Shown: piece by piece, positions 15,521 to 43,949 of the stretch
Layout: every line of letters begins with the position of its first letter
Numbering within the stretch: the stretch's first letter is position 1
Assembly: GCA_011109175.1 (NCBI GenBank)
Contig: RDEW01000019.1
Coordinates: 1 to 64,000, forward strand
Length of the DNA: 64,000 nt
Direction: 5' to 3'
Source of the DNA: Dicyema japonicum
Taxonomy: Eukaryota; Animalia; Dicyemida
Notes under the pieces: model-generated
What the model was told of the DNA's origin: nothing
Seen by the model: the letters and a program-made list of their open reading frames with translations, nothing else
Databases searched by the model: none
Translations under genes and position numbers: made by a program

Positions 15521-17761
15521 ATGACGAATTTTCCAGTATTAATGGAGAGTGTTCGTGATTATTGTTAATATGGAAGTTTATAAAATAACCAAATTTTTGC
15601 CGGAGACGTCGTTTTACGTCAAATTTGAAATGAACTCGGTTAAAACATTTTTTCTCAAATATATCACATTAGAAGATTACTTCGAAATAAGAGTAAAGCT
15701 AAATTTATCTTTTCAGAGGGCTGCTAATTGGGGAGTTACTCCATTCGTTGCTGTGATATTCATTTTTTTGATGCTCTGCGGATTCTTGGCTTTCAGTGGT
15801 CTTCGACTCATCAAGAATCACAAACTTAAATATTCATCCGTTTTCGTGTACTTTTTGATATTGTACCTCCATTTCATGACTTTAAGCTCGATTTATGTCC
15901 TGATGTCGGTTAAGATTAAAAATTTAGAAAATGTGGGGACAAAACTCAATGAACCATACGATATGATGAATAACTACGCAAATTCGCTTAGTGAAAACTT
16001 AGTATTTTTTGGGTAACGAAAGCAGACATTATGGAAAACGTCGTTCAACAGGACATATTTGAAAATCTTTAACATCTACAAAAATATCTATCAAAACTCA
16101 ATGAACCATACGATATGATGAATAACTACGCAAATTCGCTTAGTGAAAACTTAGTATTTTTTGGGTAACGAAAGCAGACATTATGGAAAACGTCGTTCAA
16201 CAGGACATATTTGAAAATCTTTAACATCTACAAAAATATCTATGATGAAAAATCAAGTGTCTATTGGGTTTTATTAATGTCACACCACTTAACATTCACG
16301 ACTATCATAAATTCGCTTCAGAACGACATACTGACATTATCAAAACTTAACATCTCCAAATATAGCACGACCTCAGACAATCTAAAGTTTATTTTGACGT
16401 CATCCGTGTAATTGGTTGGCTAAGGCCTTTAGAAATGTCGGATTTAGAAGATTAATGTGGATTATCGCTTGTTGGGTATTGTTTTGCGGAATATGTTTCA
16501 AATCTAAAATTTACTCAGTAAAGAAACTGTAAGATTAATTGATTACTCAGACTTTGTCTGATGAGCTCATTTTTTATATTAATTTCATCGCTGATACTCA
16601 CAACCATCATCGTCTTGGGGATGGTCCTNNNNNNNNNNNNNNNNAACATCTCCAAATATAGCACGACCTCAGACAATCTAAAGTTTATTTTGACGTCATC
16701 CGTGTAATTGGTTGGCTAAGGCCTTTAGAAATGTCGGATTTAGAAGATTAATGTGGATTATCGCTTGTTGGGTATTGTTTTGCGGAATATGTTTCAAATC
16801 TAAAATTTACTCCGTAAAGAAACTGTAAGATTAATTGATTACTCAGACTTTGTTTGATGAGCTCATTTTTTATATTAATTTCATCGCTGATACTCACAAC
16901 CATCATCGTCTTGGGGATGGTCCTTTTTGAGATAAATTTTAGATGCTCAACATATCCTGCACTCACTTTGACCGCAAAATCAATGATTTGGGTAATCTAT
17001 TAGATTTATCACNAAATCTAAAATTTACTCAGTAAAGAAACTGTAAGATTAATTGATTACTCAGATTTTGTCTGATGAGCTCATTTTTTATATTAATTTC
17101 ATCGCTGATACTCACAACCATCATCGTCTTGGGGATGGTCCTTTTTGAGATAAATTTTAGATGCTCAACATATCCTGCACTCATTTTGACCGTAAAATCA
17201 ATGATTTGGGTAATCTATTAGATTTATCACAGAGAGAGACTCAATAGCTAAATATTACTGGAGTTGTGAACAGAATGCGACGTTCAAATATGTGGTACCT
17301 ACGACTATATCTTAGACGGTCTCTAAAATCAATATTAATAGTATGTTAAATACGATTCGGCATATGGGCTGTCCATCTTATCGAAAGGGAATTGACTGCA
17401 CAGATATATATATAAAATACCAAGTGGAATTGTTAATTATTTTTTAGAATATCATTATCGAATTACATAATCATGATTTTATAAATTTTGTGAACGACTT
17501 GGAGGGACCTCAAAATTGCAGCAATTTTAGCAGTAATTTAAAAATTATGAAAAATCAAATCTGTGATAAAACCTCGTAAATGCTTAATTTATGTTAGATA
17601 TAATTTGATATATCCATGTGTTATTTTTATGTTTGGGAATATTATATTCCTGCTATTTGCTTTCATCATTCCGTCATTGGATGGTTATCACTTGTTTGTT
17701 ATTTCTAGAGCCAATACTTGTGGAGTCAAATTACAATCAATTTAAAATGTTTGAGTTTTGA
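15521..17761 (+). CDS. Tweety/TTYH-like 5-TM protein, paralog 1 (11 micro-introns; spans an N gap and assembly duplications)
   Basis: ATG ACG AAT TTT CCA is shared with the other copies. GT-AG introns of ~22-25 nt give a frame ending MFEF*. Contains YYWSC and C-x14-C motifs. Internal duplications (~15942-16245, ~16645-17013) prevent a clean read. Confidence 0.7.
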
Positions 17762-18189
17762 TATTAATTTTTGTTTAACAGTTTTTTTAATAATTATTTA
17801 TCAAACAATATTTTTCAAACAATAAGTAAAATTAATTATTTTATAACATCCTTCTCAACCTTCTCTTCTTGGAGCCAACCTTTATTACCTGTGTAGGTGA
17901 GTTCTCGTTTCTGCACACCCCACATTCAGTGACATCCTCATCACCATGAATCGATACTCTATGCCTTTCCTCAGCATGTATACTCTCCAAAGTCTTTTTG
18001 TAGCACTAGCATTTGTATATAAGCNTTGCCTGTGTAGGCGAGTTCTCGTTTCTGCACACCCCACATTCCATCACATCCTCATCACCATGAATCGATACTC
18101 TATGCCTTTCCTCAGCATGCATACTCTCCAAAGTCTTTTTGTAGCACTAGCATTTGTATATAAGCTTTGACCCTCTCCTCCACTTGACC

Positions 18190-18660
18190 CATGAAGATTT
18201 GGAGACAATTCCATCCTAGGTGATGACCACAGGGATTATTTTCACTTTTTTGCGATGGATCATCTCATATTCGTTCACCAGTAGGTCATACTTGTGGAAC
18301 TTTTCTACTTCGACCTGCTTGAGGAAGTTTTGCGAAGTGATCCCAATTTCAACGAAAGTAATCGTATTTTTTCCAATTTTTTGTTTTTTGTTTTTTGGCA
18401 ATTAAAAAATTGAAGAGCCATTTTTTTAATAATAAAACATAACAAAATTATATTTAATTGACCATGCATTTCAATTTCAACGAAAGTAATCGTATTTTTT
18501 CCAATTTTTTGTTTTTTGTTTTTTGGCAGTTAAAAAATTGAAGAGCCATTTTTTTAATAATAAAACATAACAAAATTATATTTAATTGACCATGCATTTC
18601 TTTCGCCAATAGTGTTATGTCTGGGTCGTAGCTTGTCATTTTTAACTTGACAGGATTACA
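18190..18660 (-). mobile_element. R4/NeSL-like non-LTR restriction-like endonuclease fragment
   Basis: YDPDITL..FVEIGITS..EKFHKYDLL..IIPVVIT, a PD-(D/E)xK-type RLE. Confidence 0.65.
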
Positions 18661-18889
18661 AATTTGTATCAGTAATTTGACTCCTTAATTTTGATTTGAT
18701 CAAATTCATGTGAAAACGCTTGCTCGCACAAATAAATATACCCGAATATCGTGAGGACGATATAAGTTGAATAATTTGAATCTTTTGACTTATTTTCATA
18801 TTTTTTTGCCACGTGAAGTCAAAGTTTGTGTGTTGTTACTCAAAAATTAATGCGCCGCAGGCGCAAGGGAACTAGATTTCTGGACGGCG

Positions 18890-19310
18890 AGTGAAACAAA
18901 CAAAAAATCATTGTGTGGGCGCGTACTTTGCACGTTTCAACCTCTCGGCATTCTCAGCAGGCCGAACAGGCTCCAGAGGCACTCTGAATTAGGTTGCAAG
19001 GAACAAAACGTGTCGGTGCAGGTGACGTCCCATACAAGAGGATTTCCGACTTTAAAGGGAAGATGGTCATTACGGAATAACGTATTTATTTACTCCCGCT
19101 TTCTTCGAATGAAAGAAACCGGTTGATAAAAGAACGACACAGCCAAGAGCGGACGATCCCAAGATCTGACAGGTGCATTTGGTTTTGTGCCGAACTCGTA
19201 GGCGGACCCGGACAAGATAAGAAGTGGTCCGTAATCTGCTCGTCAAAATGGAATGACGGGCAAAGCGGAGAGGAGGTTTGTCCGATACAGTTTAGATAGG
19301 CAGCAATGCT
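18890..19310 (-). mobile_element. CRE-like non-LTR fragment
   Basis: Minus-strand translation PLVWDVTCTDTF; homologous to ~37960-38240. Confidence 0.6.
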
Positions 19311-19589
19311 ACGGAAGAACTAAGTAATTATTAGCCATCAATTCTCAAATGTTCTCTAAATAATAAATAGGGCGATTTTTTTGACTTTATAAATCCAAAA
19401 TTTTGACATAAAATTGACTTCAATCACTAAAATTTCAAAATTTTGACCATTTTGACTTTATGACACCCTCGTGAGCGCTGCTGGTTATTTGAACGAATCT
19501 CGCTCGCTATCCTGAGAGGGAATAGCCACGCAGTCAGGGTAGCTTCTACATAGCCGTTACTCTATTTTACAATAATAAAAAAATAGATA

Positions 19590-20200
19590 TTGAAAATGAT
19601 GGAACTCATTTACGCGGATGATGTCGATTTTGTCGCGGAGTTCTTGAATTTATAGACGTTATTATTGAGAACGCGAAAACAATTTCGAGTACTGGTCTCC
19701 CAAAGTCAATGAAGACAAAACTGAAATAACCACAATCGAAAGAACATCAACCCGCGTTGAGAAGTGGTGGAACACCCAAAAACTCGGCTCATTACTTGGT
19801 GATTCAAAAGATATCACACGACGAAAAATATTGGCCACAAATTCATTTAAAAATTACAATCTATTCTGATGATAAAGAATCAAATTTCTACTAAGATGCG
19901 ATTACAATTATGGATTTGTCTGACCAGTCCTCATTTACAACGCTGATACTTGGAAAACATCAAAGAAAGACATGGAACAACTCGACTCTTTTCACAAAGG
20001 CCAAATAAGATAACTCCTTGGACTCTCTTGGTCAAAGAAAATCTAAAAAATAAATTATACAGACTGACTGATTGTGGACCAATAAGTCAGAACGTACTTG
20101 AATCCCGCTAGCGCTTTTTTTGACATCTTCTACGGATGGGTGAACAAACACCCAGCAATGCCGTTATGGAAAAATTTTTCGGCTATATTGAATCTTCTAA
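19590..20200 (+). mobile_element. Degenerate RTE-like RT fragment
   Basis: LIYADDVDF, then YNADTW..LDSFHKGQIR as in the other RTE 3' ends; many stops. Confidence 0.6.
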
Positions 20201-20259
20201 AATTTTTTTATTTTGGCTAACCTATTTTTAAATAGATTTTAATAAACTGAGCAAAAAGT

Positions 20260-22800
20260 TAGTGTGGTTGGTTTTCTGAGGAATATAAAATCTAAAATAG
20301 TTTTATATTTTTTTCTGAAAATCACAAAAACAAAGGTTATAAATTATATTTTAGTGTGTAATATACTTGCATCTTATGGATATAAGAAATCACGAAAGGG
20401 AGAATTTACCAGAGTAGTTGCAGCCATTACAGACAAAATTAGAGTACTGGAAAAAGGCTCACAATTCATGAGTCGAGGAGAGCCTTTAGGAGAGATAATT
20501 ATGGGGTAGAATTAAATAGAAGGAGATTATATCGAAGTTTTACTGGTGATGCTCAGCGTACTGTGTGTAAAGTGGGAAAAGATGAGTGTTTATCTTTTTG
20601 GGAAACCGTGTGGAAGAAAGCTGAAAGTCAGAGATCTTTCAACGTTGTCTGAAAATGTATAACTGGGGTAGAAGAGTCCCCAGTGGATTTAACACGTGAC
20701 TTTATCAAGAACATAATTGAATGTTAACCGCATTGGAAATCATCTGATTCCGATGGTGTCTTGTTTTTTTGTCAAGAAATTTGAGGCCCTTCACGATATT
20801 TTGTGTGATGAGCTATTGAAAATTGCAAGTGGGGACATTGCAAGTCTCTGAAAATTAGATGGAAGTGAAGAGGAGGTGTCAAGGCGCCAAAGTGACTTAT
20901 GCTACGGGTTCGATTCTCGCTGCTGTTCACCTGGTGAAAGGTTCCACGCATCTACGATGCTAAAAGGGTTTGACGAGTGACGCCGTCATCAGTGGATACT
21001 CACTGCGGAACTGGATTGTCTAGAAAGGATCCACACACAAGAAAAAGAAAAAAAGAAGTGAAGATCATTCCTTGGTTCTACGATTAGTTAAAATTAACTG
21101 TTCTTTACTTAAATAAAGTGTGTGTCCTACCTATGCGGAGCTATAAATACTATGGCTCTCGTGAAAAGGCTATTAAAGTTGACTGTTGCACTGAAACGTG
21201 GAATACTTCAAGGAGACTCTCTGTCTTTCCAACTTTTTGTTTTAGTCATGATCCTTTAAGCAAGATTTTAAATAATAGATTTCCAAAATTGCGTGTATCC
21301 CAAAGTAATTCATCATTGTTGACGTATTCAACCAATCACTTATTTTTTATTGATGATCTAAAAATTTTTATTGAGAAGGAAGATACAATAGTGAAGATGA
21401 TGAATGAGATTGATGAGTATTTCAGTGTGGTTGGGATTAATAGGAGTTTTGAGAAGTATGGTAGACGTAAATCTCTGGGGAGGGGAATTACTTCGATTGT
21501 CTACAAGAGTGAGTTTATGTTGTACCAGTTTCTGTCTGATATGAAAATAAAATCGCATATTTTGCTAAGAAAGGATGGAATCTTGCTGGCCTTGAAAACA
21601 AAGATGACCACGATCGCTAGATTTCTATCTTTCAAGTACAAGATAAATCTAACTCAAGTATAAGACTATCAGAGAAAGCCAAGTAAATGGCCTGATTGAT
21701 TCTATTGAGAATATACTTCATTCTTGTTGTTTAACAGTTACGAAGATGGATACGTTGACCTAGCCGGATCTTCAGAGTGATTAACCAGTGGAAATAATAG
21801 CCCGAGATCAGAAAACATGTATTGTCTGCTACATTACAAGAACTCGTTTTTTGATACCAATGATTCAGTTTGTAGTAATTGCAAGAAGGCTAACAGATCA
21901 GTGGATTTGTTTGCTTCAGGACAGGAACTCGTTTTTTGATACCAATGATTCAGTTTGCAGTAATTGCAAGAAGGCTAAGAAATCAGTGGATTTGGCTACA
22001 TGTTGTGGTAGAATGCTCAATAGTGACTATGTGAGGAGGCATTAAGAAGTTGTTAGATGCATTCACCTGCATTTATGTAGAATGTTTAAACGTCTAAAAA
22101 CAGATTCAGTTCGATCAATTGTTACGACGCAGAAGGTGAAATCTGAGTAGACACTTCCATCATGACTGACACTAAAGTTCAACACAATAAGCGAGGTATT
22201 TTTTTGTATGACAAAATGAAAAAAGAGATTGTGATTATAGAAGTTGGAATCATCTCACAAGAAGCACTCAAGCATACAGATATGGAAAAGCTACACAAGT
22301 ATGATTTTCTCGCTGGAGAATTGGGAATGTTATACGATGCTCCTGTGAGAATTATTACAGTGGTTTTGACATGGGACGGGATTATNGAGTAGACACTTCC
22401 ATCATGACTGACACTGAAGTTAAACACGATAAGCGAGATATTTTTATGTATGACAAAATGAAGAATAAGAATGTGATTATACAAGTTGAAATCACCTTAC
22501 AAGAAGCACTCAAGCTAACAGAAGTGGAAAAGCTACACAAGTATGAATTGCTCGCTGGAGAATTGAGAATGTTATTCGATGCTCCTCTGAGAATTATTCC
22601 TGTGGTTTTGACATGGCACGGGATTATCTCCACGTGTTACAGAAATCATTTGAAAGCTCTCTCAATTGATCTGCCAATAAGAGTGTATATTCAGTCGTTG
22701 GTTTTAGAGAAAACATTAGACAGTATTATTGTCGAGCACAAACACGGAGTAAAAACACCAACTGACGAAATCCTTTATGAAAACTCTTAACATTGACGAA
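20260..22800 (+). mobile_element. Degenerate R4/NeSL-like non-LTR element (RT, CCHC, RLE), interrupted by a SINE
   Basis: TNHLFFIDDLK, CSNCKKAKKSVDLATCC..YVRRH and IIEVGIISQ..EKLHKYDFLAGEL. Confidence 0.75.
20889..21175 (+). mobile_element. tRNA-headed SINE copy
   Basis: gctacgggttcgattctcgctgctgttcacctgg through cctatgcggagct matches the 41137-41592 element. Confidence 0.8.
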
Positions 22801-23750: not shown

Positions 23751-23944
23751 TTTTATTATTATTATTATTATTGTGGCGGGTTGTACTGTATTTTTATAAG
23801 TTTGAAACAATTTTAAAGAACATATGAATTTTTGACTTTATTGACAAAAATCGCCTTATTAATAACACACAAGACTCGATTGTTTTAATGATCTGAAATA
23901 CAATATTAACGACACACAATACTTAAAAATTAGAAACATAATAC

Positions 23945-25523
23945 ATGACTATTATTCCAGTATTAATGGAAATTGTTCGTAATTATTGTTAATATAGACG
24001 TTAAAAAAATAACCACATTTATGCCGGAGACGTCGTTTTACGTCAAATTTGAAATGAACTCGGTTAAAACGTTTTTTCTCAAATATATTACATTAGAAGA
24101 TTATTTCGAAATAAGAGTAAACGTAATTGTTATCTTTTCAGAGGGCTGCTAATTGGGGAGTTACTCCATTCGTTGCTGCGGCATTCATTTTCTCCGTGCT
24201 CTGTGGATTTTTGGCTTTCAGTCGTCTTCGACTTATCAGGAATCACAAACTCAAATATTCATCCACTGTCGTCTACTTGTTAATCTTGTAACTCCATTTC
24301 ATGACTTTAAGGTCGACTTATATTATGATGTTAATTAAGATTAAGAATTTAGAAAACGAGGGGACAAAACTCGATGAACCAAATGACACAATGACTAACT
24401 ACGCCAATACGCTTAACGAAAACTTTGTATTTTTTGGGTGACGAAAGCAGACATTCTGGAAGACATTGTTTAGCAAGACATATTTGAAAATCTTCAACAT
24501 CTACTATAATATCTATGATGACATGACAAGTGTCCAGCGGAATATCATCAAAAGACAGTGCTCGAACTTCAAGACTATCGTAGATTCGCTCCAGAACGAC
24601 ATCCTAACAATATCAAAGCTCAACATCTCCAAATATAGCACGGCCTCAGACAATCTAAAGTCCATTTTGAAGTCATCTATGTATTTACTTCCCTGAGTCT
24701 TCTAGAAACGTCGGATTTAGAAGATTAATGTGGATTATTGCTTGTTGGGTATTGTTCTGCGGAATATGTTTCAAATCTAAAATTTACTCAGTAAAGAAAC
24801 TGTAAGATTAATTGATTACTCAGATTTTGTCTGATGAGCTCATTTTTTATCTTAATTTCATCGTTAATACTCACAACCATCATCGTCTTGGGGATGGTCC
24901 CATTTAAGATAAATTTTAGATGTTCAACCGATCCTGCACCCACTTAGACCGCAAAATTAACGATTTGGGTACTCTATTGGATTTATCACAGGGAACGACT
25001 CAATAGCTAAATATTACTGGAGTTGTGAACAGAATGCGACGTTTAAATATGTGTGAACTACAACTATATTTTAGACGGTCTCTAAAATCAATGTCAATAG
25101 AATTTTTAATTCGTATCATTTATTGGGATGTCCAAAAAATATAGTGGGATATGACTGCTCAGGTTCATATGGAAAATACCAAGTGAAATGTTTTATTCTT
25201 ATTTTTAGAATATCATCAATGAATCAAATTATGATGATTTTATAAAATTTGTGAATGACCTGGAGGGACCTCAAAATTGCAAAGATTTTAGCAGGAATTT
25301 AAAAATTATGAAAAATCAAATCTGTGATAAAACCTCGTAAATTCTTAATTTATGTTAGATATAATTTGATATATCCATGTGTTATTTTCATGATTGGGAA
25401 TATTATATTCCTGCTATTTGCTTTCATCATTCCGTCATTGGATGGTAATTAATGGTCTGTCTATTTATAGAGCCCATACTGGTAGAGTCAAATTACATTC
25501 AATTTAAAATGTTTGAGTTTTAA
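23945..25523 (+). pseudogene. Tweety/TTYH-like paralog 2 with premature stop
   Basis: Same 12-exon structure as the other copies. In-frame TAA at 24289-24291 where the others have TAC. Predicted intron 1 is only 19 nt. Confidence 0.7.
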
Positions 25524-25908
25524 TATTAATTTTTGTTAACAATTATTTATATTAAAAATATTAATTTTGAAATCACCATAATTTAGCTAACGAAAAAATG
25601 TTAATATTTAACACAGTGGTTCTCAACTTGCTATATCGTCCAAATTGGGCAGTGGGATTTTTAAATATTCATTTTTTATAAATTTTTTTTGTAGAAAGAA
25701 TAAAATATTAATGGAATATATTTTATAGATTTAATTAAATAAAAATAAAAAAACCAAGTTTTATTATTATGGAAAACACGATTAAATCAAAATTACTACT
25801 CGCTTCTATACAATTTTCAGTTCAATTATGACATTTTTATGTCAATTTTGACTATGTGATATTCTATTATGATATTTTTTATATCAATTTTGACTTCGTT
25901 TATTATAG

Positions 25909-26900: not shown

Positions 26901-27010
26901 GAAAATACATAGGCCCCTATGCTATCATGGCCCTCATCAAAATTTTCAACTTTTCAATCAACGAAAATTGTATTCCTTCCATATGAAAGCTATCAAACAT
27001 ACGACCTATT

Positions 27011-28070
27011 ATGAAACCCGGGCGACCAAAGGGATCACCAGCCTCATACAGACCAATATCTCTCCTATGTGTTACATCAAAACTTTTGGAAAAACTGATT
27101 CTTGAACTAATCAGAGCATACCTTCCTGATGCACCTTTTCAACACGGATTCAAAAAAGGACACTCCACAGAAACGCATCTTACATGCCTTACAAATTTCA
27201 TCAAGGATGGACTAAAGCGCAAACCTCATCAGAAGTCTTTGTTATGCTCCATCGATATAGAAAAAGCTTTCGACACTGTCCCAAGAAAGCTTTTGACAAG
27301 GAAGATCTTTACGTCAAAAATTCCAAACAACCTGAAAATCTGGATCGCAAATTTCCTAAATGGAAGAAGAGAAAGAGTAACTGCTGGAAAAACTAGATCA
27401 GTGACCAAGTTCCTTCCAAATGGAGTCCCTCAAGGATCTCCACTTTCACCACACCTATTCAACCTATTCTTAAATAATATGTTCTCCCTTACCAGTGACG
27501 ATATTCTGGTTCTGGCATATGCGGATGATATAATCGTCGCAGTCAAAGACCAGTGCGTTCGTGCTGCTGTTTACCGAATACAAGCTTCATTGGACGATCT
27601 GAACTGTTGGCTCGTTAAGAACATTCTATATACAAGTCCCGAAAGGTCTTATACAACAATTTTCAGAACAAACAGAAGATTGATAAACTCTGCTCCATGT
27701 GTAACCATAAATGGAAACTCAATCCCCACGACCAACTCGGTCAAGATACTGGGCGTAACTTACGACCCACTCTTGACCTTCAACAAACACATCGACAAAG
27801 TCATCTCTTCGGCACAACGAAAGCTAAATTTAAAACACTCCTTGGACAATATAATGGGTGTTTCAACTCAAATTTGGACTCGCTCTACGTGCAGTATATT
27901 CAACCGTCTTTAACTTACGGGTGTGCTGCATGGGGAACCAACCTATCAAACAGGAATATAGAAAAAATCAAAACCTTTCAAAAAATGGCCAGTAAGGTTT
28001 TGCAAAGGTTTTCTTGGACACCTCTAAACCCTACATTTTTTGAGAAACTAGTGAGGAAAACCGGAGCCTT
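27011..28070 (+). mobile_element. Jockey-like reverse transcriptase (300-aa ORF, best preserved in the window)
   Basis: KPGRP..SYRPISLL, FQHGFKKGHST, IDIEKAFDTV, GVPQGSPLSPHLFN, LAYADDI, ILGVTYD. Confidence 0.95.
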
Positions 28071-28449
28071 ACTACCCTCCAAAAAAGTTAGAAACCCAAA
28101 AAGACAATATCAGAATATTGTTTCCATCTACCAACCACTCAGTGGATCCAACAACATCAATATTTTCGTCCTCGCAACAATCATAAATTATAAAGTGGAG
28201 CGACTTTCTTCTAGTACTATCCATTAGGGATTTCTGTTGATAGTCTTTGATAACGCTAAGGCTTACTCGGGTGAGGTCCATCATACATTGAAAGTAAGGA
28301 ATCCTGTGATTATAGTCATGTGTTTTCAACCTATGTTATTATTTCCAAAAAATGAAATTTGTCACTTTCCTAAAATCGAAGAATTTGCAGAGTATGAATT
28401 TGGAAATTAATAAGTCACTCAAAACAACTTTCTCGTTTTGAGGATTAAT

Positions 28450-31720: not shown

Positions 31721-32399
31721 GACACAAGATATGTGGAAACCACACGAACAGGTCGTGAGTGGATCATCCGGTTTCTTTTGTTACTTATGTTGCATTTTTT
31801 GCAAATATCATCTTTTTGCAATTTGCTGCATCTTTCTGATTTTTCTTTTTCTTCAACACCACAAAAGTAGGGTGCGTTTTTTTCAATCTAACTTGTAATT
31901 TCATTATTAAGGTGAGATAGTTTGGCCATAGGAATTCTTGATTTTTTGAGTCGGCGTATTGTATGAATCATTGATAATTTCCTTATAGAAATTGGGACGA
32001 TAGTCTGCAATGAGTCCTCTTGATTTTTCTCTTATCACTGAGGATAACCTCATTAAAAATTGCACAACGGCGTCAAGCGATTTGAAATTCTCAACGGAAA
32101 AGTTGGATAGTATTTTGCGTTTCTTTGCGGAATGAATCCCATTTTCCACGTTTGTAATTTATTATGGTTTTCCGGTGCCTAACAATAGGCGAGAGTAGTT
32201 CGATTGAAGAATTGGATTATGATTGAGGTCATACATAACTTTCATGATATCGCCGAAGATAGCGATGGAGAATATAGATTGAGGTCTGAAGATGTAATGG
32301 AGTGTCCGGCTCTGGAAGCTGTCCGAGTTTTGATTTTTGTCATTGAGAGGATCTGAAATCCCCTCTCATTTCTCGTTTAGCCAAATAGACAAAGCGGAT

Positions 32400-32979
32400 C
32401 TTTGGCATTTAGGTCTTCGCAGATCACTACATTTTTAATCTTTTGCAGTTCGGTTAGTTTTGGGGAGTATTGTTTCATAAAGGGACCCAGTGGGGGATGT
32501 AAATATTTACAGATGCGTACGGTTTGTGGTTTATTTTTTAACCAAATAGGCAAAGCGGATCGTTGGCATTTAGGTCTTCGCAGATCACTACATTTTTAAT
32601 CTTTTGCAGTTCGGTTAGTTTTGGGGAGTATTGTTTCATAAAGGGACCCAGTGGTGAAATGTAAATATTTACAGATGTGTACGGTTTGTGGTTTATTTTG
32701 ACCATGACGGAAGTAAGTTCAACAGGATTGGCACTCAAACAGAGCGTGTGACCGAGTCGAAGTATCAGAGAAAGGAATAGATTTGTGTATGAGTACACCA
32801 TCTCCCGTGTTTGAATTCGGTCGATCACGGTGGACAATTGAGTAATTTTTGAAGTAAAAAAGAATTGATTTTCTGGATAGTTTAGTTTTTTGTAGGAGGG
32901 AAATATCGATTTTGTGGATAGTGAGAAATTCAACAAGTTCAGTTGATTTGTGTGCGAGACCGTTTATGTTGAATTGCAT
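32400..32979 (-). mobile_element. Jockey-like APE endonuclease 5' fragment
   Basis: MQFNINGLAHKSTELVEFL..IDISLLQKTKL, VNIYISP and ICEDLNAND. Confidence 0.8.
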
Positions 32980-33480: not shown

Positions 33481-33579
33481 GTCTCAGATGATGACTTAGA
33501 CCTTTACCTTACAGAAACTCTATGACCTAATTTCTCTTTCCAACGTTTCATTAAGGACGGGCGTAGTCTTCTTGTTGGA

Positions 33580-34930
33580 AAGTCTAGGGCGGAAGCCACG
33601 TCACTTGTGAGACTCGGGATGGTGTTTGGGTTCCAGAGAGTTCGTTTTGAATGGTACAGGAAACCGATAACTAGGTGCTACCGATTCCAAAAATTCGGGC
33701 ACATTGCGAATTTCTGCGAGGAAACAGAAAGGTGCTTAATTTGTGGTGGAGGGAACAATATGAACTCTTGTTTGGCCAAGTACAATGAAGGAAATGCATC
33801 AACTAAAGGAAGTTGGTCATTTGGCTTGTTATGGTAGTTGCTCTTCAGCAAAGGCTGCCTTTGAAGGAGGAAGAACAAAAGAAATGACTAAGAAAGTGTT
33901 TCGACCTGTTAAGTAGGTTAAAGCTGAGGCAGTTGAAAGTGTGTTGGGAATATCTACACGCTCCATTAAATTTGATTTTTTAACCCAAATGGACGCGAAA
34001 ATAACCTAACCTTTGACAATACATTGTCTCCGATTACACAGACAAAGGGAATACTATCAGTACTCCTAATCTGGTGGAAGGCACAGTTGCTTGGAAAAAT
34101 AAATGCTGTTGACAAACTGGTTGACATTTGTGCCGAAAAAAGGACTTGACGTCAGGAACTTGTTGGCCTTTTTTGGAGAGGCAGAGGTTCTACAAACATG
34201 AAGTCTGTTCTTACCATCATTGCGGTGAACCCCCGATCCTTTAAGAGAAGGCGTTCTGAGATTGTGTATATCCACCAATCACGCTGATATATTAGTTGTT
34301 AGTGAAACTGTTCTCGATCTTTTTGGGGACTAGAACTCTAAAGATACCTCGTTTAGATGTTTGGGGACGAATAAGATAGCCTTGTTCTGAAAGATATGCT
34401 TGTGTCTTCTGGGTTTTCCGTTGTGACGTCCTCGTTCAGAATCACTATTCTCCAAGTGGATAGGATTATTATGACATGGCGTTAATATCGGAATCTGTTT
34501 ATCAATTTTTGGAACGACAAATTACGCTTGCTCATATTGGTCTCTTTTAAAACAAATATGTTGAAGTCTTTAAAAAGAAAACAATGCTTGAGAAACAAAC
34601 TACGGGGATCTTCTGATCCGGTGACCTCATTGACTTGGAAATTATGACGATCACACAAGAAATACACGGATTAGAAAAAGTTAACAAGAATAATTTATGG
34701 ATAGCTCATTGCAGTGGATATAGAAAAAACCAAATTTTAAGATAGTCTATAACAGAGTGAGCGGACGTAAATCCAAAAAATTCCATTGTTGCAAAAACTT
34801 GATGGGTCTCCAGACGAGCCCCTGTCTTGTTTGCCCCTTAGTTCTCTAAAAAAAGCTGGAAAAAGTAGTTAGTTATTAACCACATTACAGCTCTATAATT
34901 GGTGGACTAGTCGATATGCAGTAAAATGCA
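33580..34930 (+). mobile_element. LINE fragment (gag-like ORF1 knuckles plus decayed ORF2 start) abutting paralog 3
   Basis: RCYRFQKFGHIANFC..RCLICGG (CCHC knuckles). The 3' part is homologous to 1560-2210. Confidence 0.65.
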
Positions 34931-35004
34931 AGAACTCGATTGTTTTAATGATCTGAAATACAATATTAACGACACACAAGACTTAAAAATTAGAAACATA
35001 ATAC

Positions 35005-36584
35005 ATGACTAATATTCCAGTATTAATGGAAATTGTTCGTAATTTTTGTTAATATGGAAGTTTATAAATTAACCAAATTTCTGCCCAAGACGTCGTTTTT
35101 CGTCAAATTTGAAATGAACTCGGTTAAAACATTTTTTCTCAAATATATCAAATTAGAAGACTATTTCGAAATAATAGTAAAGCTAATTGTTATGTTTTCA
35201 GGAAGCTGCTAATTGGGGAGTTACTCCATTCGTTACTGCGGCATTCATTTTCTCCGTGCTTTGTGGATTTTTGGCTTTCACCGGTTTTCGACTCATTAAG
35301 AATCACAAACTCAAATATTCATCCGTTGTCATGTACTTTTTGATATTGTACTTCCATTTCATTACTTTAAGCTCGATTTATGTCCTGATGTTGGTTAAGA
35401 TTAAAAATTTAGAAAACATGGAGACAAAACTTGATGAACCAAATAACACGATGAGTGAATACGCCAATTCGATTAGAGAAAACTTTGTAATTTTTTGGGT
35501 GACGAAAGCAGACATTATGGAGTACATTGTTCAACAGGACATATTTGAAAGTCTTCAACATCTACAATAATATCTCTGATAATATAACAAGAGTCCAGCG
35601 GAATATCATCAAAACACACTGCTTGAAATTCAAGACTATACTAGATTCGCTTCAGAAAGACATCCTGACATTATCGAAACTTAACATCTTCAAATATAGC
35701 ACGATCCCTTATCATCTAAAGTCAATTTTAAAGTCATCCATGTATTTGGTTCGCTAAGCCCTCTAGAAATGTCGGATTTAGAAGATTAATGTGGATTATC
35801 GCTTGTTGGGGATTGTTTTGCGGAATATGTTTCAAATCAAAAATTTTCTCTGTAAAGAAACTGTAAGATTAACTGATCACTCAGATTTTGTTTAATGAGC
35901 TCATTTTTCATATTAATTTCATCGTTGATACTCACAACCATCATCGTCTTGGGGATGGTCCCATTTGAGATAAATTTTAGATGCTCAACATATCCTGCAC
36001 TCACTTTGACCGAAAAATCAATGATTTGGGTAATTTATTAGATTTATCACAGGGAGAGATTCAATAGCTAAATATTACTGGAGTTGTGAACAGAATGCGA
36101 CGTTCAAATATGTGTCATATACGACTATATCCTAGAATGTCTCTAAAATCAATGTCAGGAGAGTGTTAAATAGGATTCATCATATAAGCTGTCCAATGTT
36201 TATAATGGGATATGACTGCTCAGTTGTATATGGAGAATACCAAGTGAATTGTTTTATTCTCATTTCTAGAATATCATCAATGAATTAAATTATGATGATT
36301 TTATAAAATTTGTGGATGACTTGGAGGGACCTCAAAATTGCAGCGATTTTAGCAGGAATTTAAAAGTTATGAAAAATCAAATCTGTGATAAAATCTCGTA
36401 AATTCTTAATTTATGTTAGATATAATATGATATATCCATGTGTTATTTTCATGATTGGGAATATTATATTCCTGCTATTTGCTTTCATCATTCCGTCATT
36501 GGATGGTAATTAATGGTCTGTCTATTTATAGAGCCCATACTTGTCGAGTCAAAATATAACCAATTTCAAATGTTTGAGTTTTGA
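35005..36584 (+). CDS. Tweety/TTYH-like 5-TM protein, paralog 3 (438 aa, 12 exons, apparently intact)
   Basis: Eleven GT-AG introns of 22,25,25,25,22,23,23,24,26,22,26 nt leave 1317 nt with no internal stop. Five hydrophobic segments have TTYH spacing. SC..KYYWSC and NCSDFSRNLKVMKNQIC match the TTYH DFC..YYxxC and C-x14-C patterns. The family call rests on topology and cysteine pattern only. Confidence 0.8.
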
Positions 36585-36689
36585 TATTATTTTTTTTGAA
36601 ATATTAAAAAATACTAAGTTTGAACTCATCATAATTTACCAACAAAAAACGTTAATATCTAACATATTGCATGTTAGTCGCAGATCTAG

Positions 36690-37760
36690 GTAAGAATTAT
36701 TGCAAAAATATATGTAGAATGATCATCTGAATCATAAGCCTCCTTCAAATCTATCCACATTGCCAAAAGGGAATTTCCATGAGACGCTGAAATGACTTTT
36801 TGATCATAGCCTTCTCTTTACCCCCTGTAAATTACCCAACTGATACTCGGAGAGAATTCCATCGGCCTATACAAAGCTTCTGATCCTATTAGCCACTAAT
36901 TTAGTCGTCAGCTTATACAGCAGATTCGATAATTTGCTGCAGACTGAGGGTTGTCCAGCTTTTGGATCAAATAAGTTGTCCCATTATGGACCTATCAGGA
37001 ATCGTTACCGGGTTAATGATGTTTTTCTGTATTACACGACGCTTAGACTCGTGCAATGACGTACATCTTTTGATAAAGAAATTATAGACTTTATCTACTC
37101 CGGTCGTTTTCAAATCAGGGAGACACATCTCACTACCAGCTCAAATTTTTTGTGGAAATCGAAAATTTGGAGAGATTTCTTCAAAAAAGAAGCGGGACCT
37201 TCCACACATTTCTTCTGTGTGATTTAGCCTCCCACATACTATCCCATGTGGAAAGCATTGCCTCGTCCTGCTTGGAACATTCACTATGTCAATTTCCGTG
37301 TAGGTGACGTATACAATCTGCTATTAAACTCAAGAAGATTAATTTCTCTCCTTCTTTTTACCGACTTTCATGTGTATAGAGTTTCCTCCTATACATTATT
37401 ATTCCATACTTTATCTCTACCTTTTAAGGTTCTCAAGGAGAATATTTTCAGTTGCAGCGAGATTCGTGAAGACCTCATAAACATGCTTGAGCTGCAACGT
37501 ATCACATTTCTGGTGCTCGTGCTCTCTGACAGTTGTGTTCATTTGGTCCCTGACCCTTTAGATAAGTACTCCTCTGACTTTCTTTGTCTACTGCCATTTT
37601 CTTGAGCTCACTTACAGATATGAAAGTACTAAATCTGCCACTGCATAGCTCCGATAGGTATGGCCAGCCATTCCAAGGCATCCTAAATAGCCTGTTACGT
37701 ACCTGCAGAACTACATGCTTCACTCATATCAGTTGCCACAACGCTCTCGGATATGGCAAG
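36690..37760 (-). mobile_element. Degenerate R4/NeSL-like RT region
   Basis: Fragmentary RT-like translation (NYRII, IDLKKAY-like) with many stops. Confidence 0.4.
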
Positions 37761-37959
37761 AATTATATTCTTACCATCTGTAACGTGAGTAACACTTCTC
37801 TTTTTTCCTTACAACATTTTTACCAACTCGAGAAAGTTTTAACGTTAATGTTTTTTTATTTATTGTTGTTATAAATGAAAAAAATTTATTACTGAAAAAA
37901 GTGATAAAGTTGTCATTTAGCGCCCCCCCCCCTCTGAATGCGTGGCTATCCTTTATCAT

Positions 37960-38700
37960 GATGGCGATCGAGATTCGCTCAAATCGCTCACCGAGATCTG
38001 AAGCAAACCAGTGGTTAAAATAAAGTCACATCCAAGAGCGGACGATCCCAAGATCTGACTTGTGTATTTGTTTCTGTGCAGAACTCGTAGGCGGACCCGG
38101 AAAAGAGAAAAAGTAGCCCGTAATATGGTCGTCAAGAAACATGACGGAAAAAGTGGAGAAGACGATTGTCCGAGATGGGAAAGCTTCACTTCCGTCAATA
38201 TTAATGTAAGAGATCTCAGTAGCTTGTTAGCAGCAATGCTAATGAAATGGTGCATGGTAATGCTCTGAGCCAGGCACTAGTTCCGTTTTTCGATTCAGAA
38301 GTCAGACAAGCCAAACAAGCTCATGTTTCATCTCGTCCATGATCTTTGAGCATAAAAGCTTGTAAATTCTCGTTGTTTATTTGCGTTTTTATGAAATCCC
38401 ACACTCAGTCGCGTCCTTTCTTCCCTATCTATGCATCCCACTGATTTAGCGCCCTATCCGTTTATGTAGTGTAAAATCTGGCGTATGAAACCACTGGAAG
38501 CATATGTCGAAGATAGAAAAGCCGGGAAGGCGAGTTCTAAATTAAGCGTAATCCGATTCCTCTGTAGCGAAGCGGAAGTTTGCATTTGACACAGTCAGTT
38601 ATGTCAAAAGAAATGTTGAGTGTTTTTTCAGCGACAGTCCTTAGCTTCTTGTCCATGTCCATGAAACATGAAACTGTCTGTAGAAGAAAATTCCTGAGGA
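37960..38700 (-). mobile_element. CRE-like fragment
   Basis: KLPLRYRGIGLR (CRE-type LP.R.GGLG.R); homologous to 18890-19310. Confidence 0.6.
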
Positions 38701-38723
38701 AGAATAAAAGGAGAGTTGACATN

Positions 38724-38821
38724 ACTTCTTTTTTTCTTTTTCTTGTGTGAGTGTTTTTTCTAGACAATCTAGTTCCGCAGTGAGTATCCACTGATGACGG
38801 CATCACTCGTCAAACCCTTTC
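38724..38821 (-). mobile_element. SINE internal fragment
   Basis: acttctttttttctttttcttgtgtg..gttccgcagtgagtatccactgatgacggc matches the SINE body. Confidence 0.75.
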
Positions 38822-39099
38822 TGGGACTGTCTGTAGAAGAAAATTCCTGAAGAAAAATAAAGACATGTGAAAGTCCAGGGTTTTTAAATTGGATGTGAGT
38901 GGTTGAACGAATGCATTTTTCACTTCCAGGAGAGTTGACATGTTACTGCCATATAGTGAAGAGTCGAAAAAATTGTATTTTCGAGTCGGGTGATCGAGAC
39001 ATCCATAAGATGAGTAGAAATCGTAGTCACTGCATGGTCAAAGTCGTCCTCTCCCGAGCAACGTTAATGATTTCACATTTATGAGAATTCTGTTCCAAC

Positions 39100-40900
39100 C
39101 CAAGTGCTGCAAGTGCAAAGATGGCGGACTCGACCTTTGCCACCACAATTTCCCAATTCCCTCCGATCATCCAAGTACCATAAGTTCAGTGGAGTTCCGA
39201 TCGCTGATGCTGCACAAGTGATGCCCAAGGCAAAGAGTAGGAGGCCAAGGGGGTCGCCTTGTTGGACTCCAGTCTTGGATTCGATGAAGTGTTGTTCTCA
39301 GTTTGGGGCTTAGAGTCTTGCTCGCTGAAATCTTCGCCATCAGGCGCCTGAATACGCTGCCTATAGCAATGGGTCTTGAATTATTACAAGGCTTTCTGAA
39401 GGCGATCGGTTTGGATGCAAAAAGGAGTCCTCTGGCATAGTCGAAGATATCATCCGAAGAATGTGGTCTGTAAGGGTTTTTATTGAATTAATGAGAAGGC
39501 GATCGGTTTGGATGCAAAAAGGAGTCCTCTGGCATAGTCGAAGATATCATCCGAAGAATGTGGTCTGTAAGGGTTTTTATTGAATTAATGAGGGAGTTCC
39601 CAACCAAGCCAGCAGTGCTGCTTCCTGAGAAAGATGAAATGACAGATCGTATATTACCTGTGGTGGTTGCCAAATTTGGAATGTCCTTCCCAATTTCTGT
39701 CTCGCGTTATTGAATGATGAGCTCGAGGGTTTCTTTAGCTGGTGAAAGAACCTTGTCATTGCTGGAGAGCGTGCGCAGAACTCCTCGAATGTCCCCTACC
39801 ATATTTTTTTATTCACTCTTTGCGTAGATTTGTTTATCTTGATCCTGGATGATGATGGCGAATGATCACCAATCGAAAGACTTTCCAATGAAGTCTCCAG
39901 GTTAACAGTTTCGTATTTAGAGGCATTTCTCTTGATGATTGAATTGAGGTCCTTTCTTTCAGTTCGGTAGAATGTGATCCGAGGACAAAAGGTTCATAGA
40001 GAGAAAGCTCATCCAGGCATCTTGAGTATTGTCGTCGACTTCTCAGGTGATTAGTTTTAAAAACAGGAGGCAGCTGTTAGACGCGCCGACCTTGGGATCC
40101 TCTCCGACACAAGTCGATTCAAACGGCGTAGGCAATCATCCGTTGTTAAATAGGTCCAGGACAGGTCCAGAGGAGGACTCCCTTCTCCCGCAGTGATATC
40201 CAAGGCATGAGCGGTATGACCAATTTGGCAGAGATTGTGCGGTCCTTCTTGTTAGCTTATAGCAGCCAAGGTATCCAAAATTTGTCAACAGTAACATTGA
40301 ACACCGAATTCCCTCTTATTTGTTTTGCTACTGATTATACAGAAAAGAGACGTGCAGGAAACGTAGATTATTACGTCCACTTTCAGTTCATTGTCGTTTT
40401 TTCTGGCAGTAAGGTAAGCCATTATCAATCAATTGACATAAACGTGTTTGATATACTGTCATATCAAAGAACAAAAAATCAACATATAACAAATCGATGA
40501 TGTATGCTCTGCAATTCAAAGACGAATTCGAAATTTATAATCGACTGTTTTGTTCCCTATGCACTAAAGTAGTCGATTCATCAAAGAAATTTAAAAGTTC
40601 TGAAGATATCTCTTCAGCCTCTTCTAGAGTTTCTTCACCTCTTTTATGAAGGGCCAGCTTGATTGAAAAATTTTCTATATTGTGAATTTCGCATGGCTTT
40701 CGACTTTTCCATTGAGTGACTTAAGCCCGGGACTTACACCACCAGAGAATTTCTTCCAAGAATTCACGTAATCTTCCCTCAGAAACCACCGGACTTTTCG
40801 AGACGTTGATATCAGTATATCGTCTGTGTAAATTATCACGTTTGTACTAGGATTCCTGGGGGCCGGAAAATCTCTCAAATATATTAAAGAGCAGAGAACT
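39100..40900 (-). mobile_element. Degenerate Jockey-like LINE fragments (gag knuckle, EN, RT pieces)
   Basis: CQIGHTAH knuckle remnant, SPCWTP-type linker and VIIYTDDILI. Confidence 0.55.
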
Positions 40901-41136
40901 CAGGACTAAGCCTTGTGACACTTCCCTCTTCATTACAATCTCTTCAGAAGTAAATCCTCCTCATCTCACAAATGACGTTTTCCTTGTCAGAAGACTCCTT
41001 AACTAATCGAGTAAAAGTTTTAGGATTTCAGCTCTATACCATTCAAAGCTGATTTTCTTCAATTACATAATATTTCAAAAATTACGAAGTCATGTGTGAT
41101 ATAATTAGTTCTTTTGAATGTTAGGAAATTCTACAA

Positions 41137-41592
41137 TAATTAATAATAATAACAGCCTTTTTCATGGAGCCGTGGTATTAGCTCCGCATAGGCAGGACAC
41201 ACACTTTATTTAAGTAAAGAACAGTTAATTTTAACTAAACGTAAAACCAAGGAATGATCTTCACTTCTTTTTTTCTTTTTCTTGTGTGTGGGTACTTTCT
41301 AGACAATCCAGTTCCGCAGTGAGAGTCCACTGATGACGGCGTCACTCGTCAAGCCTTTTTAGCATCGTANAGAACCAAGGAATGATCTTCACTTCTTTTT
41401 TTCTTTTTCTTGTGTGTGGGTCCTTTCTAGACAATCCAGTTCCGCAGTAAGAGTCCACTGATGACGGCGTCACTCGTCAAGCCTTTTAGCATCGTAGATG
41501 CGTGGAACCTTCCACCAGGTGAACAGCAGCGAGATTCGAACCCGTAGCCTAAGCCACTTAAGCCCGACACCTAACCACTAAGCTACCCGGCC
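41137..41592 (-). mobile_element. Full-length tRNA-headed SINE with 14-bp TSD
   Basis: Head GGCCGGGTAGCTTAGTGG..GGGTTCGAATC, a (TTA)n tail, and aggaaattctacaa repeated at 41123-41136 and 41593-41606. It contains a 128-bp N-flanked duplication. Confidence 0.85.
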
Positions 41593-42279
41593 AGGAAATT
41601 CTACAAACACAATCAATTACCGCAACATTTCATTAAGATAGTTCTTAACTATTCTAGAATAAATCAGTCTTTACTTTTACGAATTACCTCGAGTTTGAGA
41701 AGACAATAAAAAAGTTAAAGTTTTAATGAGAAAAAAAACAGAAATTTCAAAGACACAAATGTGAATACTGTATTATTGAGCTATGACAATTTTTGTTTTA
41801 ATAATAGGAGAGAAGACGAGTACATTTCTCTCCAGTGTCGGACGAAGGCTTGCTTCGAAGAGTTACGAGCTTTGTGAAAGACTTTGGTAGAAGCAAAGGC
41901 ACAAATTGGCGGTGATCAGTGGGAACGCCTTCGTAATCCTGGCCTTTTGACTAAAAATCTTTACATGTTTTAATGTTTCTTTTTTCAAAACTAAAATCAG
42001 CCTCTCCATGATTTTTGAAATTGAGTCTATCAGAATAAAGTCTATAGCCAAGGGAAATATTCTCGATTTTTCTGGTTTTGGGATCATCCAAATAATAATA
42101 TTTTTTTAATGCTATATTTTGTGGTTTATAGATGCTATGATGCTATTTTAAGTGCTATAATTTAAATTTTAACTGCTATAAAAAATTGCCTATTAATTAC
42201 ACAAAAAAACTCGATTGTTTTAATGATTTGAAATACAATATTAACGACACATAATACTTAAAAATTAGAAACATAATAC

Positions 42280-43846
42280 ATGACTAATATTCCAGTATTA
42301 ATGGAAATTGTTCGTAATTTTTGTTAATATGGAAGAAGTTTATAAATTAACCAAATTTCTGCCCAAGACGTCGTTTTATGTCAAATTTGAAATCGACTTG
42401 GTTAAAACATTTTTTCTCAAATATATCACATTAGAAGATTATTTCGAAATAAGAGTAAATGTAATTGTTATTTTCTCAGGGGGCTGCTAATTGGGGAGTT
42501 ACTCCATTCGTTGCTGCGGCATTCATTTTCTTCGTGCTTTGTGGATTCCTAGCTTTCAGCGGTTTTCGACTCATTAAGAATCACAAACTCAAATATTCTT
42601 CAATTGTCGTCTACGTTTTTATCTTGTACCCCATTTCATAACTTTAAGGTCGATTTATATTCTGATGTTGGTTAAGATTAAGAATTTAGAAAACGAGGGG
42701 ACAAAACTCAATGAACCATACGACACGATGACTAACTACACCAATTCGTTTATTGATAACTTTGTATTTTTTTCGAGTGACGCATGTAGACATTATGGAA
42801 GACATCGTTTAACAGGACATATTTGAAAATCTTCAACATCTACTATAATTTCACTGATCAATTGAATAGTATCGATTTGGCTATCATCAATGCATACTAC
42901 TGGAAATTCACTACTATCATAAATTCGCTCCAGAACGACATTCTGACGATATCTAAACTCAACATCTCCAAATATAGCTCGACCTCTGACAATCTAAGGT
43001 CTATTTTGAAGTCATCAATGTATTTTGTTCTCTAAGTCCTCTAGAATCTTCGGATTTAGAAGATTAATGTGGATTATCGCTTGTTGGGTATTGTTCTGCG
43101 CAATATGTTTCAAATCTAAAATTTACTCAGTAAAGAAACTGTAAGATTAACTGATCACTCAGATTTTGTCTGATGAGCTCATTTTTTATATTAATTTCAT
43201 CGTTGATACTCACAACCATCATCGTCTTGGGGATGGTCCCATTTGAGATAAATTTTAGATGTTCAACCGATCCTGCACCCACTTTGACCGCAAAATTAAC
43301 AATTTTGGTACTCTATTGGATTTATCACAGGGAACGACTCAATAGCTAAATATTATTGGAGTTGTGAACAGAATACGACGTTCAAATATGTGTTACCTGC
43401 GACTATATTTTAGACGGTCTCTAAAATCAAAGTTAGTAGAATGTTTATGACGATTCAATATGGGCTGTGTCCATATTATATAATGGGAATTGACTGCAAT
43501 AATTTATTTGTAAAATATCGACTTATTTCTAGAATATCATCAATGAACTAAATCATGATGATTTTATAAAATTTGTAAACAACTTGGAGGGACCTCAAAA
43601 TTGCAGCGATTTTAACAGGAATTTAAAAGTTATAAAAAATCAAATCTGTGATAAAACCTCGTAAATTTTTAATTTATGTTAGATATAATTTGATGTATCC
43701 ATGTGTTATTTTCATGATTGGGAATATTATATTTCTGCTATTTGCTTTCATCATTCCGTCATTGGATGGTTATCACTTGTTTGTTATTTACAGAGCCCAT
43801 ACTGGTGGATTCAATATACAATCAATTTCAATTGTTTGAGTTTTGA
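42280..43846 (+). CDS. Tweety/TTYH-like 5-TM protein, paralog 4 (intron 9 donor deleted; in frame if a cryptic donor is used)
   Basis: Same exon structure, with no stops if gtaaaatatcgacttatttctag is spliced; ends LFEF*. Confidence 0.7.
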
Positions 43847-43949
43847 TATTAATTTTTGTTTAACAATTATTTACATTACAAATATATTTCAATTGCAGGC
43901 CCTTTAAGAGTCTTAATTTATTATTATTATTAATAGCACTTTCGAAGAA

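Follow-up and report, generated by a model that had tools for sequence, protein, structure and literature searches.

Evidence for diversifying selection at two predicted extracellular patches of a tandem membrane-protein family in Dicyema japonicum

Dicyemids are animals of about 30 cells that live in cephalopod kidneys. Where diversifying selection is confined to the outer surface of a membrane protein, it is a textbook sign of a molecular arms race or a recognition system. Herein, we focus on a stretch of 64,000 nucleotides (nt) of Dicyema japonicum DNA (positions 1 to 64,000 of contig RDEW01000019.1, assembly GCA_011109175.1), referred to as the window. It holds four plus-strand paralogues (c1 to c4), which share a unit of about 1.75 kb with pairwise identities of 86-92% (self-BLAST). 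An initial annotation of this DNA described two hypervariable ectodomain patches on a near-invariant scaffold and suggested diversifying selection at a host-facing surface. Why would such similar genes differ so strongly in two short stretches, and is selection really needed to account for it? In short, the scaffold is under purifying selection (omega, i.e., the ratio dN/dS of nonsynonymous to synonymous substitution rates, of 0.13-0.5), and the patches are under positive diversifying selection (omega about 3-6). Diversifying selection at the two predicted extracellular patches is thus well supported for a four-sequence data set. The explanation as a whole, which we consider probable, is that selection diversifies the tip patches of a constrained pentaspan stalk that serve as a recognition or recognised surface, with one apex per paralogue.

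Selection on the two variable patches

The two patches and the most constant part of the scaffold, transmembrane (TM) segments 3 and 4, are located as follows.

16232-16297, plus strand: patch 1 of c1, in loop 1, 22 codons
24505-24570, plus strand: patch 1 of c2, at the mid-point of ecto-loop 1, with the predicted break of the exon-4 helix at its start
35566-35631, plus strand: patch 1 of c3, with two N-x-S/T sequons that have no counterpart in c1 and c2
42844-42909, plus strand: patch 1 of c4, with one sequon
17337-17405, plus strand: patch 2 of c1, in loop 2, 23 codons around a fixed C-P-x4-G-x-D-C
25096-25164, plus strand: patch 2 of c2, at the mid-point of ecto-loop 2
36157-36225, plus strand: patch 2 of c3, located by peptide match
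43435-43503, plus strand: patch 2 of c4, located by peptide match
24716-24896, plus strand: predicted TM3, short lysine-rich cytoplasmic turn and TM4 of c2 (exons 5-6 and the 22-nt intron 5)

All ten peptides quoted in the initial annotation for TM3-TM4 and the loop patches are present in the four copies, on the plus strand and where they had been placed. Mean pairwise nucleotide divergence reaches 33% in both patches, compared with 10% in the remaining codons and 10-14% in introns, so the patches are indeed more divergent than the introns. The introns themselves had been called almost identical in several cases, which is true of introns 2, 5, 6, 7, and 10 (4.5-8% divergence) and not of introns 4, 8, 9, and 11 (17-22%). 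Divergence at codon positions 1, 2, and 3 amounts to 0.41, 0.27, and 0.32 in patch 1 and to 0.34, 0.37, and 0.29 in patch 2, versus 0.09, 0.07, and 0.15 in the remaining codons. Counted by codon column, the patches hold 37 nonsynonymous, no synonymous-only, and 8 invariant columns, and the rest of the gene 106, 56, and 201 (Fisher, 1.3e-6).

The same contrast appears when nonsynonymous and synonymous changes are followed along the gene. The proportion of silent differences (pS) is roughly flat at 0.12-0.33 (0.18 in the patches versus 0.21 elsewhere), whereas its nonsynonymous counterpart (pN) rises sharply at the two patches, to 0.3-0.42 (0.37 for the patches together), and lies at 0.00-0.20 elsewhere. 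In TM3-TM4, pN is 0.02 and pS is 0.15. The scaffold is therefore near-invariant as protein, as had been claimed, but not as DNA, and it is kept so by purifying selection and not by homogenisation alone. In the six Nei-Gojobori (NG86) pairs, omega is 0.40-0.61 for the whole gene and 0.27-0.36 outside the patches (dS 0.20-0.28). Within the patches dN is 0.32-0.61, and it exceeds dS in all six pairs, with omega between 1.5 and 4.8. In round terms, replacement changes have accumulated there two to four times as fast as silent ones.

Site models, which the initial annotation had proposed as a check, likewise place omega in the patches above 1. They were run with our own Goldman-Yang codon likelihood with F3x4 frequencies (not PAML), and recombination was screened by runs and triplets. 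M2a improves on M1a under each of the three four-taxon topologies, with likelihood-ratio test (LRT) statistics of 27.7, 25.7, and 17.8 and 8-10% of sites at omega 4.1-5.7. On the best topology, the LRT is 26.5 for M8 against M7 and 25.6 for M8 against M8a. Of the 29 sites with a posterior above 0.5 under any topology, 22 fall in columns 147-169 or 305-328. A partition test of the 45 patch codons with shared branch lengths gives omega 3.0-3.7 and an LRT of 43-58 against omega = 1. When the patches receive their own branch lengths, the LRT is still 26-33, and omega reaches its bound, as none of the codon differences within the patches is purely silent. Since recombination can inflate site models and a star tree leaves no room for a wrong topology, M1a and M2a were also compared on all four three-sequence subsets. 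The LRTs are 6.6, 12.0, 9.0, and 17.6 (p 0.037 to 0.00015), the strongest triplet being c2-c4, from which the badly assembled c1 is absent and in which six of the seven sites with P>0.8 lie in the patches. Pairwise counts, site models, and triplets thus agree with the proposal of diversifying selection at both ecto-loop patches.

Recombination is certainly part of the history of these genes. The 81 parsimony-informative sites form 30 runs where 53 are expected (p<1e-5; none of 100,000 shuffles below 32), i.e., sites supporting one grouping stand in long runs, which marks the copies as mosaics of short conversion tracts. In codons 350-395, pS is near 0. Homology among c1-c4 also has sharp edges, about 210 nt 5' of the start codon and about 55 nt 3' of the stop (at 23846 and 25613 in c2 and at equivalent points in c1, c3, and c4), although silent sites differ by just some 20%, and transposon fragments are the sole sequence that the intergenic DNA of the copies has in common. 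Such abrupt edges could mean that the gene alone was copied, that the spacers were wholly turned over, or that conversion makes the unit look younger. All three observations (mosaic, near-zero pS, and edges) fit a history of relaxed constraint and concerted evolution, where conversion keeps old copies alike and the patches simply escape it and drift neutrally. Escaped patches, though, should show high silent divergence, and their pS is no higher than that of the flanks, so homogenised flanks, which the initial annotation had named as part of a refuting outcome, do not explain the contrast. Drift cannot raise dN above dS either, and omega = 1 is rejected for the patches even with their own branch lengths. 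Moreover, the patches are free of indels in all four copies (as had been noted), and their reading frame is open, with no stop in frame 0 of any copy versus 13 and 21 in the other two frames. Patch 1 also keeps the hydrophobic positions of a helix. Taken together, we judge neutral escape to be quite improbable.

A second reading that starts from conversion supposes that the patches were replaced as cassettes, templated on more distant family members elsewhere in the genome, so that clustered multi-nucleotide changes mimic selection. In both patches the copies group as c1+c4 and c2+c3, a pattern that differs from the flanks, and c2 and c3 share most of patch 1. Contigs from public DNA runs of the same species match at least 90% on both sides of patch 2 and skip or replace the patch itself (25092-25202), and the summed contig depth of conserved segments (e.g., TM3-TM4) is 4-10 times that of unique segments. 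These contigs may point to additional family members, besides the four in the window, which could act as donors. On the other hand, no fifth copy or fragment was found within the window (tblastn), and imported older sequence should have raised silent divergence, which is not raised in the patches. An exchange of cassettes would still leave the origin of the variants to be explained by selection, because the variants themselves show the excess of amino-acid changes. Cassette import as the source of the signal is thus fairly improbable, and diversifying selection with some reshuffling by conversion remains our preferred reading.

Gene model, micro-introns, and assembly

The gene model was obtained by aligning the four copies and following their reading frames. 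It comprises 12 exons per copy with 11 intervening introns, each 22-26 nt long and, in all 44 cases, of the GT-AG type (with a shifted donor in intron 9 of c4). The resulting open reading frames (ORFs) are intact, with 421, 412, 421, and 418 codons in c1 to c4.

15434-17793, plus strand: unit of c1 (self-BLAST), as assembled and thus inflated in length by three contig-overlap duplications
23846-25613, plus strand: unit of c2 (self-BLAST)
34929-36664, plus strand: unit of c3 (self-BLAST)
42181-43885, plus strand: unit of c4 (self-BLAST)
15570-15692, 15717-15862, 15887-16001, 16178-16407, 16433-16528, 16551-16623, 16943-16991, 17233-17291, 17316-17423, 17448-17575, 17598-17683, 17709-17761, plus strand: coding sequence of c1, path after overlap collapse, 421 amino acids
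24021-24116, 24142-24287, 24312-24426, 24451-24680, 24706-24801, 24824-24896, 24920-24968, 24992-25050, 25075-25182, 25209-25336, 25359-25444, 25471-25523, plus strand: coding sequence of c2, 12 exons, 412 amino acids
35054-36584, plus strand: coding sequence of c3, 12 exons, 421 amino acids
42329-43846, plus strand: coding sequence of c4, 12 exons, 418 amino acids
23846-24020, plus strand: conserved upstream region of c2, some 125-200 nt ahead of the start codon being about 90% identical among copies, beginning at the homology edge

The copies share their orientation and are spaced 7-11 kb apart. No terminal repeats framing the unit were found, and carriage of the unit by a transposon was rejected for that reason. 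As judged from their sequence, we are dealing with four intact, tandemly arranged paralogues of a lineage-restricted gene.

Small departures from the common model are readily accounted for. In c2, ATA replaces the start ATG of the other copies, and the start was therefore set at an ATG 10 codons downstream. In c4, a 15-nt deletion took the usual donor of intron 9, which leaves exon 9 four codons shorter: a GT 12 nt upstream fits as the new donor of a 23-nt intron (43510-43532), at the cost of four residues beside patch 2. Exon 9 and intron 9 of c4 (43414-43532) thus offer an example of micro-intron boundary sliding. Among animals, introns of the 22-26 nt class have been reported only for Dicyema japonicum and myxobolid myxozoans (PMC13644364). 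An in-frame TAG after TM4 had raised the alternative of a ciliate code (TAG/TAA read as glutamine). This was rejected because the TAG lies, in every copy, within a 23-nt GT-AG intron; the metazoan genes in the window (the cadherin-like gene, the reverse transcriptase fragments, and the TIS11-type zinc-finger gene discussed below) also speak against it.

Could the patches nevertheless be non-coding or mis-framed, owing to a wrong gene model or to pseudogenes? The four public runs that hold the locus are DNA (their contigs continue through introns and intergenic sequence) and showed no intron joints, no homologue turned up in the databases searched, and c1 is badly assembled. Yet four independent open frames of about 1250 nt all need the same 11 GT-AG introns. 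Length differences that are not a multiple of three all fall inside predicted introns (1, 2, 3, 9, and 11), the only in-frame stop is a TAA within the predicted intron 2 of c2, and exon lengths differ among copies by one 3-nt insertion and the 12 nt in c4. Outside the patches omega is about 0.3, and cysteines, sequon positions, and TM helices are conserved. Comparative support for the gene model is strong, and an artefact of this kind is very improbable indeed.

The poor state of c1 has a simple cause. Three segments occur twice: 15940-16091 recurs as 16092-16243 (100% identity, no N between), 16349-16628 recurs as 16645-16924 (280 nt, 2 mismatches) on either side of a 16-N gap at 16629-16644, and 16796-17012 recurs as 17014-17230 (217 nt, 5 mismatches) across a single N at 17013. 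As both flanks of the 16-N gap are the same 280 nt, this gap is an unmerged contig overlap that hides no sequence. Taken literally, c1 would have a doubled TM3, with FRRLMWIIACW at 16443 and again at 16739. Collapsing the three overlaps brings it into base-for-base alignment with c2-c4 and leaves it with an open, in-frame ORF. The mismatches between overlapping contigs are far fewer than the differences between paralogues and resemble allelic or pooled-sample variation. One of them decides the start of TM4. The peptide FCLMSS, quoted in the initial annotation, does occur in c1, but in the third overlapping contig alone (at 17066), whereas the c1 model uses the contig left of the gap (16551-16623) and has LCLMSS.

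16092-16243, no strand: assembly artefact, exact second copy of 15940-16091
16629-16924, no strand: assembly artefact, 16 N plus a second copy of 16349-16628, so that exons 5 (TM3) and 6 (TM4) and the last part of exon 4 occur twice
17013-17230, no strand: assembly artefact, one N plus a second copy of 16796-17012, with the F/L mismatch at the start of TM4
9822-10308, 14372-14782, 22145-22627, 32376-32699, 50113-50439, 54177-54726, and 61842-62168, no strand: further unmerged-overlap repeats found by self-comparison (32376-32699 without any N)

At most single-N positions in the window, the 160-280 nt before the N recur directly after it with 90-99% identity, so we are looking at a scaffolding habit of the assembly. 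Overlapping contigs are systematically left unmerged, and genes crossing an N may therefore show duplicated exons.

Predicted protein and related systems

In each of the four copies, hydropathy predicts five TM segments. TM1 is joined to TM2, and TM3 to TM4, by a short stretch rich in lysine and arginine (K/R), all 7-9 N-x-S/T sequons of each copy fall within the two long loops, and six cysteines of loop 2 are fixed across copies. Given the well-established positive-inside rule, the sequons, and the loop-2 cysteines, the N terminus and both long loops are placed outside and the 18-residue tail inside. The product is thus predicted to be a pentaspan membrane glycoprotein of about 420 residues, with the N terminus outside and an 18-residue cytoplasmic tail after TM5, and TM1-TM2 and TM3-TM4 are predicted to be hairpins joined by short K/R-rich cytoplasmic turns. 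This topology puts both patches on the non-cytoplasmic side, contrary to the other outcome (cytoplasmic patches) that would have undone the original proposal.

The predicted ecto-loops measure about 110 (loop 1) and 120 residues (loop 2), and patch 1 (alignment columns 147-168) and patch 2 (columns 305-327) straddle the mid-points of their loops. An AlphaFold 2 model of the exon-4 fragment, built on the four-sequence alignment, shows two helices (residues 2-24 and 27-75) with a break at the start of patch 1, at a mean predicted local distance difference test (pLDDT) of 76 and a predicted template modelling score of 0.37. Within patch 1, positions holding V/I, I/L, I/L, and F are kept hydrophobic at helix spacing while the residues between them vary, which is in line with a helix that is buried on one face and exposed on the other.

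From these elements we propose the following arrangement. Each ecto-loop would be a long helical hairpin, so that the loop mid-point would be the tip furthest from the membrane. Patch 1 would take in the turn of the hairpin along with the initial turns of the descending helix, and patch 2 the end of a helix and a 10-residue mini-loop framed by cysteines. Together they would form one variable, membrane-distal apex on a constant stalk, with the variable sites exposed at the surface and in contact with a partner. Short gene-conversion tracts shuffle segments among the copies, and each paralogue would present a different version of the apex to ligands or host molecules outside the cell.

Several points weigh against this reading and the selection behind it. 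The patches were picked after looking (the shared-rate p, about 1e-11 to 1e-14, would withstand a correction for some 400 possible windows). There are just four sequences, one of which, c1, is stitched from overlapping contigs, and with some 12 synonymous sites per patch the estimate of local dS lacks precision. Changes that span several nucleotides or are templated would raise omega, and the recombination that is present inflates the LRTs of site models, an effect that triplet and pairwise tests reduce and do not remove. As for the fold, the terms "apex" and "exposed" are based on loop arithmetic plus a single fragment model; the model of the exon-9 fragment is unreliable (pLDDT 52). The DNA nature of the public runs, mentioned above, belongs here as well.

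To which known proteins is the family closest? Searches with exon-encoded pieces gave no relatives. A phmmer search with exons 1-3 against 1.84 billion representatives returned no match, Pfam scans (E<=10) and PDB sequence searches yielded nothing usable (no Tweety in either and no prominin in the former), and the best ESM Atlas score (0.83, bacterial lipoproteins) lies below the meaningful range. By description, the closest architecture is that of the Tweety homologues TTYH1-3 (PF04906). Their cryo-electron microscopy structures show five TM helices, an extracellular N terminus and an intracellular C terminus (TTYH2 being modelled to residue 416), ecto-loops whose paired long helices lead to a distal four-helix bundle, a second loop that contains a disulfide-stapled hairpin, and N-glycans (PMC8361169). 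The predicted pentaspan shares the five TM segments, the orientation, and the ecto-loops between TM2-TM3 and TM4-TM5, as far as hydropathy, K/R loops, and sequons predict them. The ordered Tweety core of about 416 residues compares with 412-421 residues here, the disulfides of loop 2 with the six fixed cysteines, and the N-glycosylated ectodomain with the sequons in both long loops. Bearing on a possible bundle and stapled hairpin are the two long helices of the exon-4 fragment model (pLDDT 76) and the six fixed loop-2 cysteines, the exon-9 model contributing nothing reliable. In contrast to Tweety, no sequence similarity is detectable in the exon pieces, a long cytoplasmic tail is absent, and TTYH proteins have not been described as having hypervariable patches at the apex or paralogues in tandem arrays. 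A remote relationship may still exist, since exon pieces alone were searched.

Prominin-1 (CD133, PF05478) is also a pentaspan protein with two large glycosylated ecto-loops and short cytoplasmic turns (PMC11405016), a plan that the predicted product shares. Prominins are, however, about twice as long (800-900 residues), with ecto-loops of about 250 residues versus about 110 and 120 here, and neither a sequence match nor described hypervariability links prominin-1 to the family. Given the length of 412-421 residues, the short loops, and the lack of a Pfam match, membership was rejected.

In evolutionary behaviour, the closest analogues are found among parasite proteins, namely schistosome tetraspanins and the Plasmodium 2TM proteins. 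The pattern that defines this functional class, clustered sites with dN/dS significantly above 1 and purifying selection elsewhere, is the one found here. In the schistosome proteins TSP-2, TSP-8, and TSP-23, the large extracellular loop is positively selected (dN/dS >1) while the whole gene is under purifying selection (PMC10012309). Like the pentaspan family, these are membrane proteins of a parasite with constant TM helices and diversification in a cysteine-stabilised ecto-loop, but they have four TM segments and a CCG motif (five TM segments, no CCG, and two patches on two loops here), and they vary among isolates, whereas the pentaspan varies among paralogues. Membership was rejected on the five TM segments, the single loop-2 cysteines, and the absence of CCG from all four products. 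The Plasmodium 2TM proteins (RIFIN, STEVOR, Pfmc-2TM) form multicopy families, with a short hypervariable exposed loop between conserved TM helices (PMC1751529). They differ in coming from an unrelated organism and protein, in their much larger families, in their export motifs, and in antigenic variation directed against antibodies, and serve as an analogy only.

Surroundings of the locus and its biological meaning

With about 36% guanine plus cytosine (GC), many reverse transcriptase fragments of long interspersed nuclear elements (LINEs), and frequent small gaps, the window resembles the published D. japonicum draft, whose GC content is 36.7% and of which 49% consists of repeats, with LINE-1 abundant among them, and 4.1% of gaps (PMC6736024). 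The spacers and neighbouring genes contain the following features.

27011-28227 and 21118-22790 (plus strand), 45402-45821 and 54593-55066 (minus strand): LINE-type reverse transcriptase fragments in the spacers; 27011-27913 matches RVT_1 (Pfam, E 5e-36)
20890-21175 and 41150-41559: inverted pair, 92-94% identity
39398-39592: 97-nt unit twice in exact tandem, in the c3-c4 spacer
48370-48741, plus strand: intronless zf-CCCH gene, 123 amino acids, two C-x8-C-x5-C-x3-H fingers (Pfam E 1e-17), TIS11/tristetraprolin type
4335-5840, minus strand: cadherin-like membrane protein, single exon, 501 amino acids

The sole good relative of the cadherin-like ORF is a "protocadherin gamma-C5-like" protein of 526 residues in an Octopus sinensis assembly (34% identity, 95% coverage). 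The match could represent a true spiralian relative or parasite DNA within the octopus assembly. No member of the pentaspan family lies within 10 kb of that octopus gene (21.6 kb of sequence with 33% GC, the gene at 10001-11581 of it).

To our knowledge, the cephalopod hosts of dicyemids have no antibody-based immunity, so that a role in recognition, in attachment, or in evading innate factors is more likely than classical antigenic variation. Going one step further, the family might be an orphan, Tweety/prominin-like pentaspan family that acts as a variable receptor repertoire, the patches forming a composite binding site atop a four-helix stalk and conversion reshuffling the tips among paralogues. 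We regard this extension as speculative and rather unlikely. If true, the family (probably of more than four paralogues) would help decide host attachment and specificity or recognition by the host's innate defences.

Localised diversifying selection has not previously been described for this predicted pentaspan scaffold, which has no detectable sequence relatives. Within 1.3 kb of coding sequence, the locus allows purifying selection, positive selection, and short-tract conversion to be told apart, which makes it a compact test case, and it illustrates how intact families of micro-intron genes escape ORF-based annotation. Dicyemids are among the simplest animals, and their host specificity and attachment are unexplained; the pentaspan genes are candidates for both.

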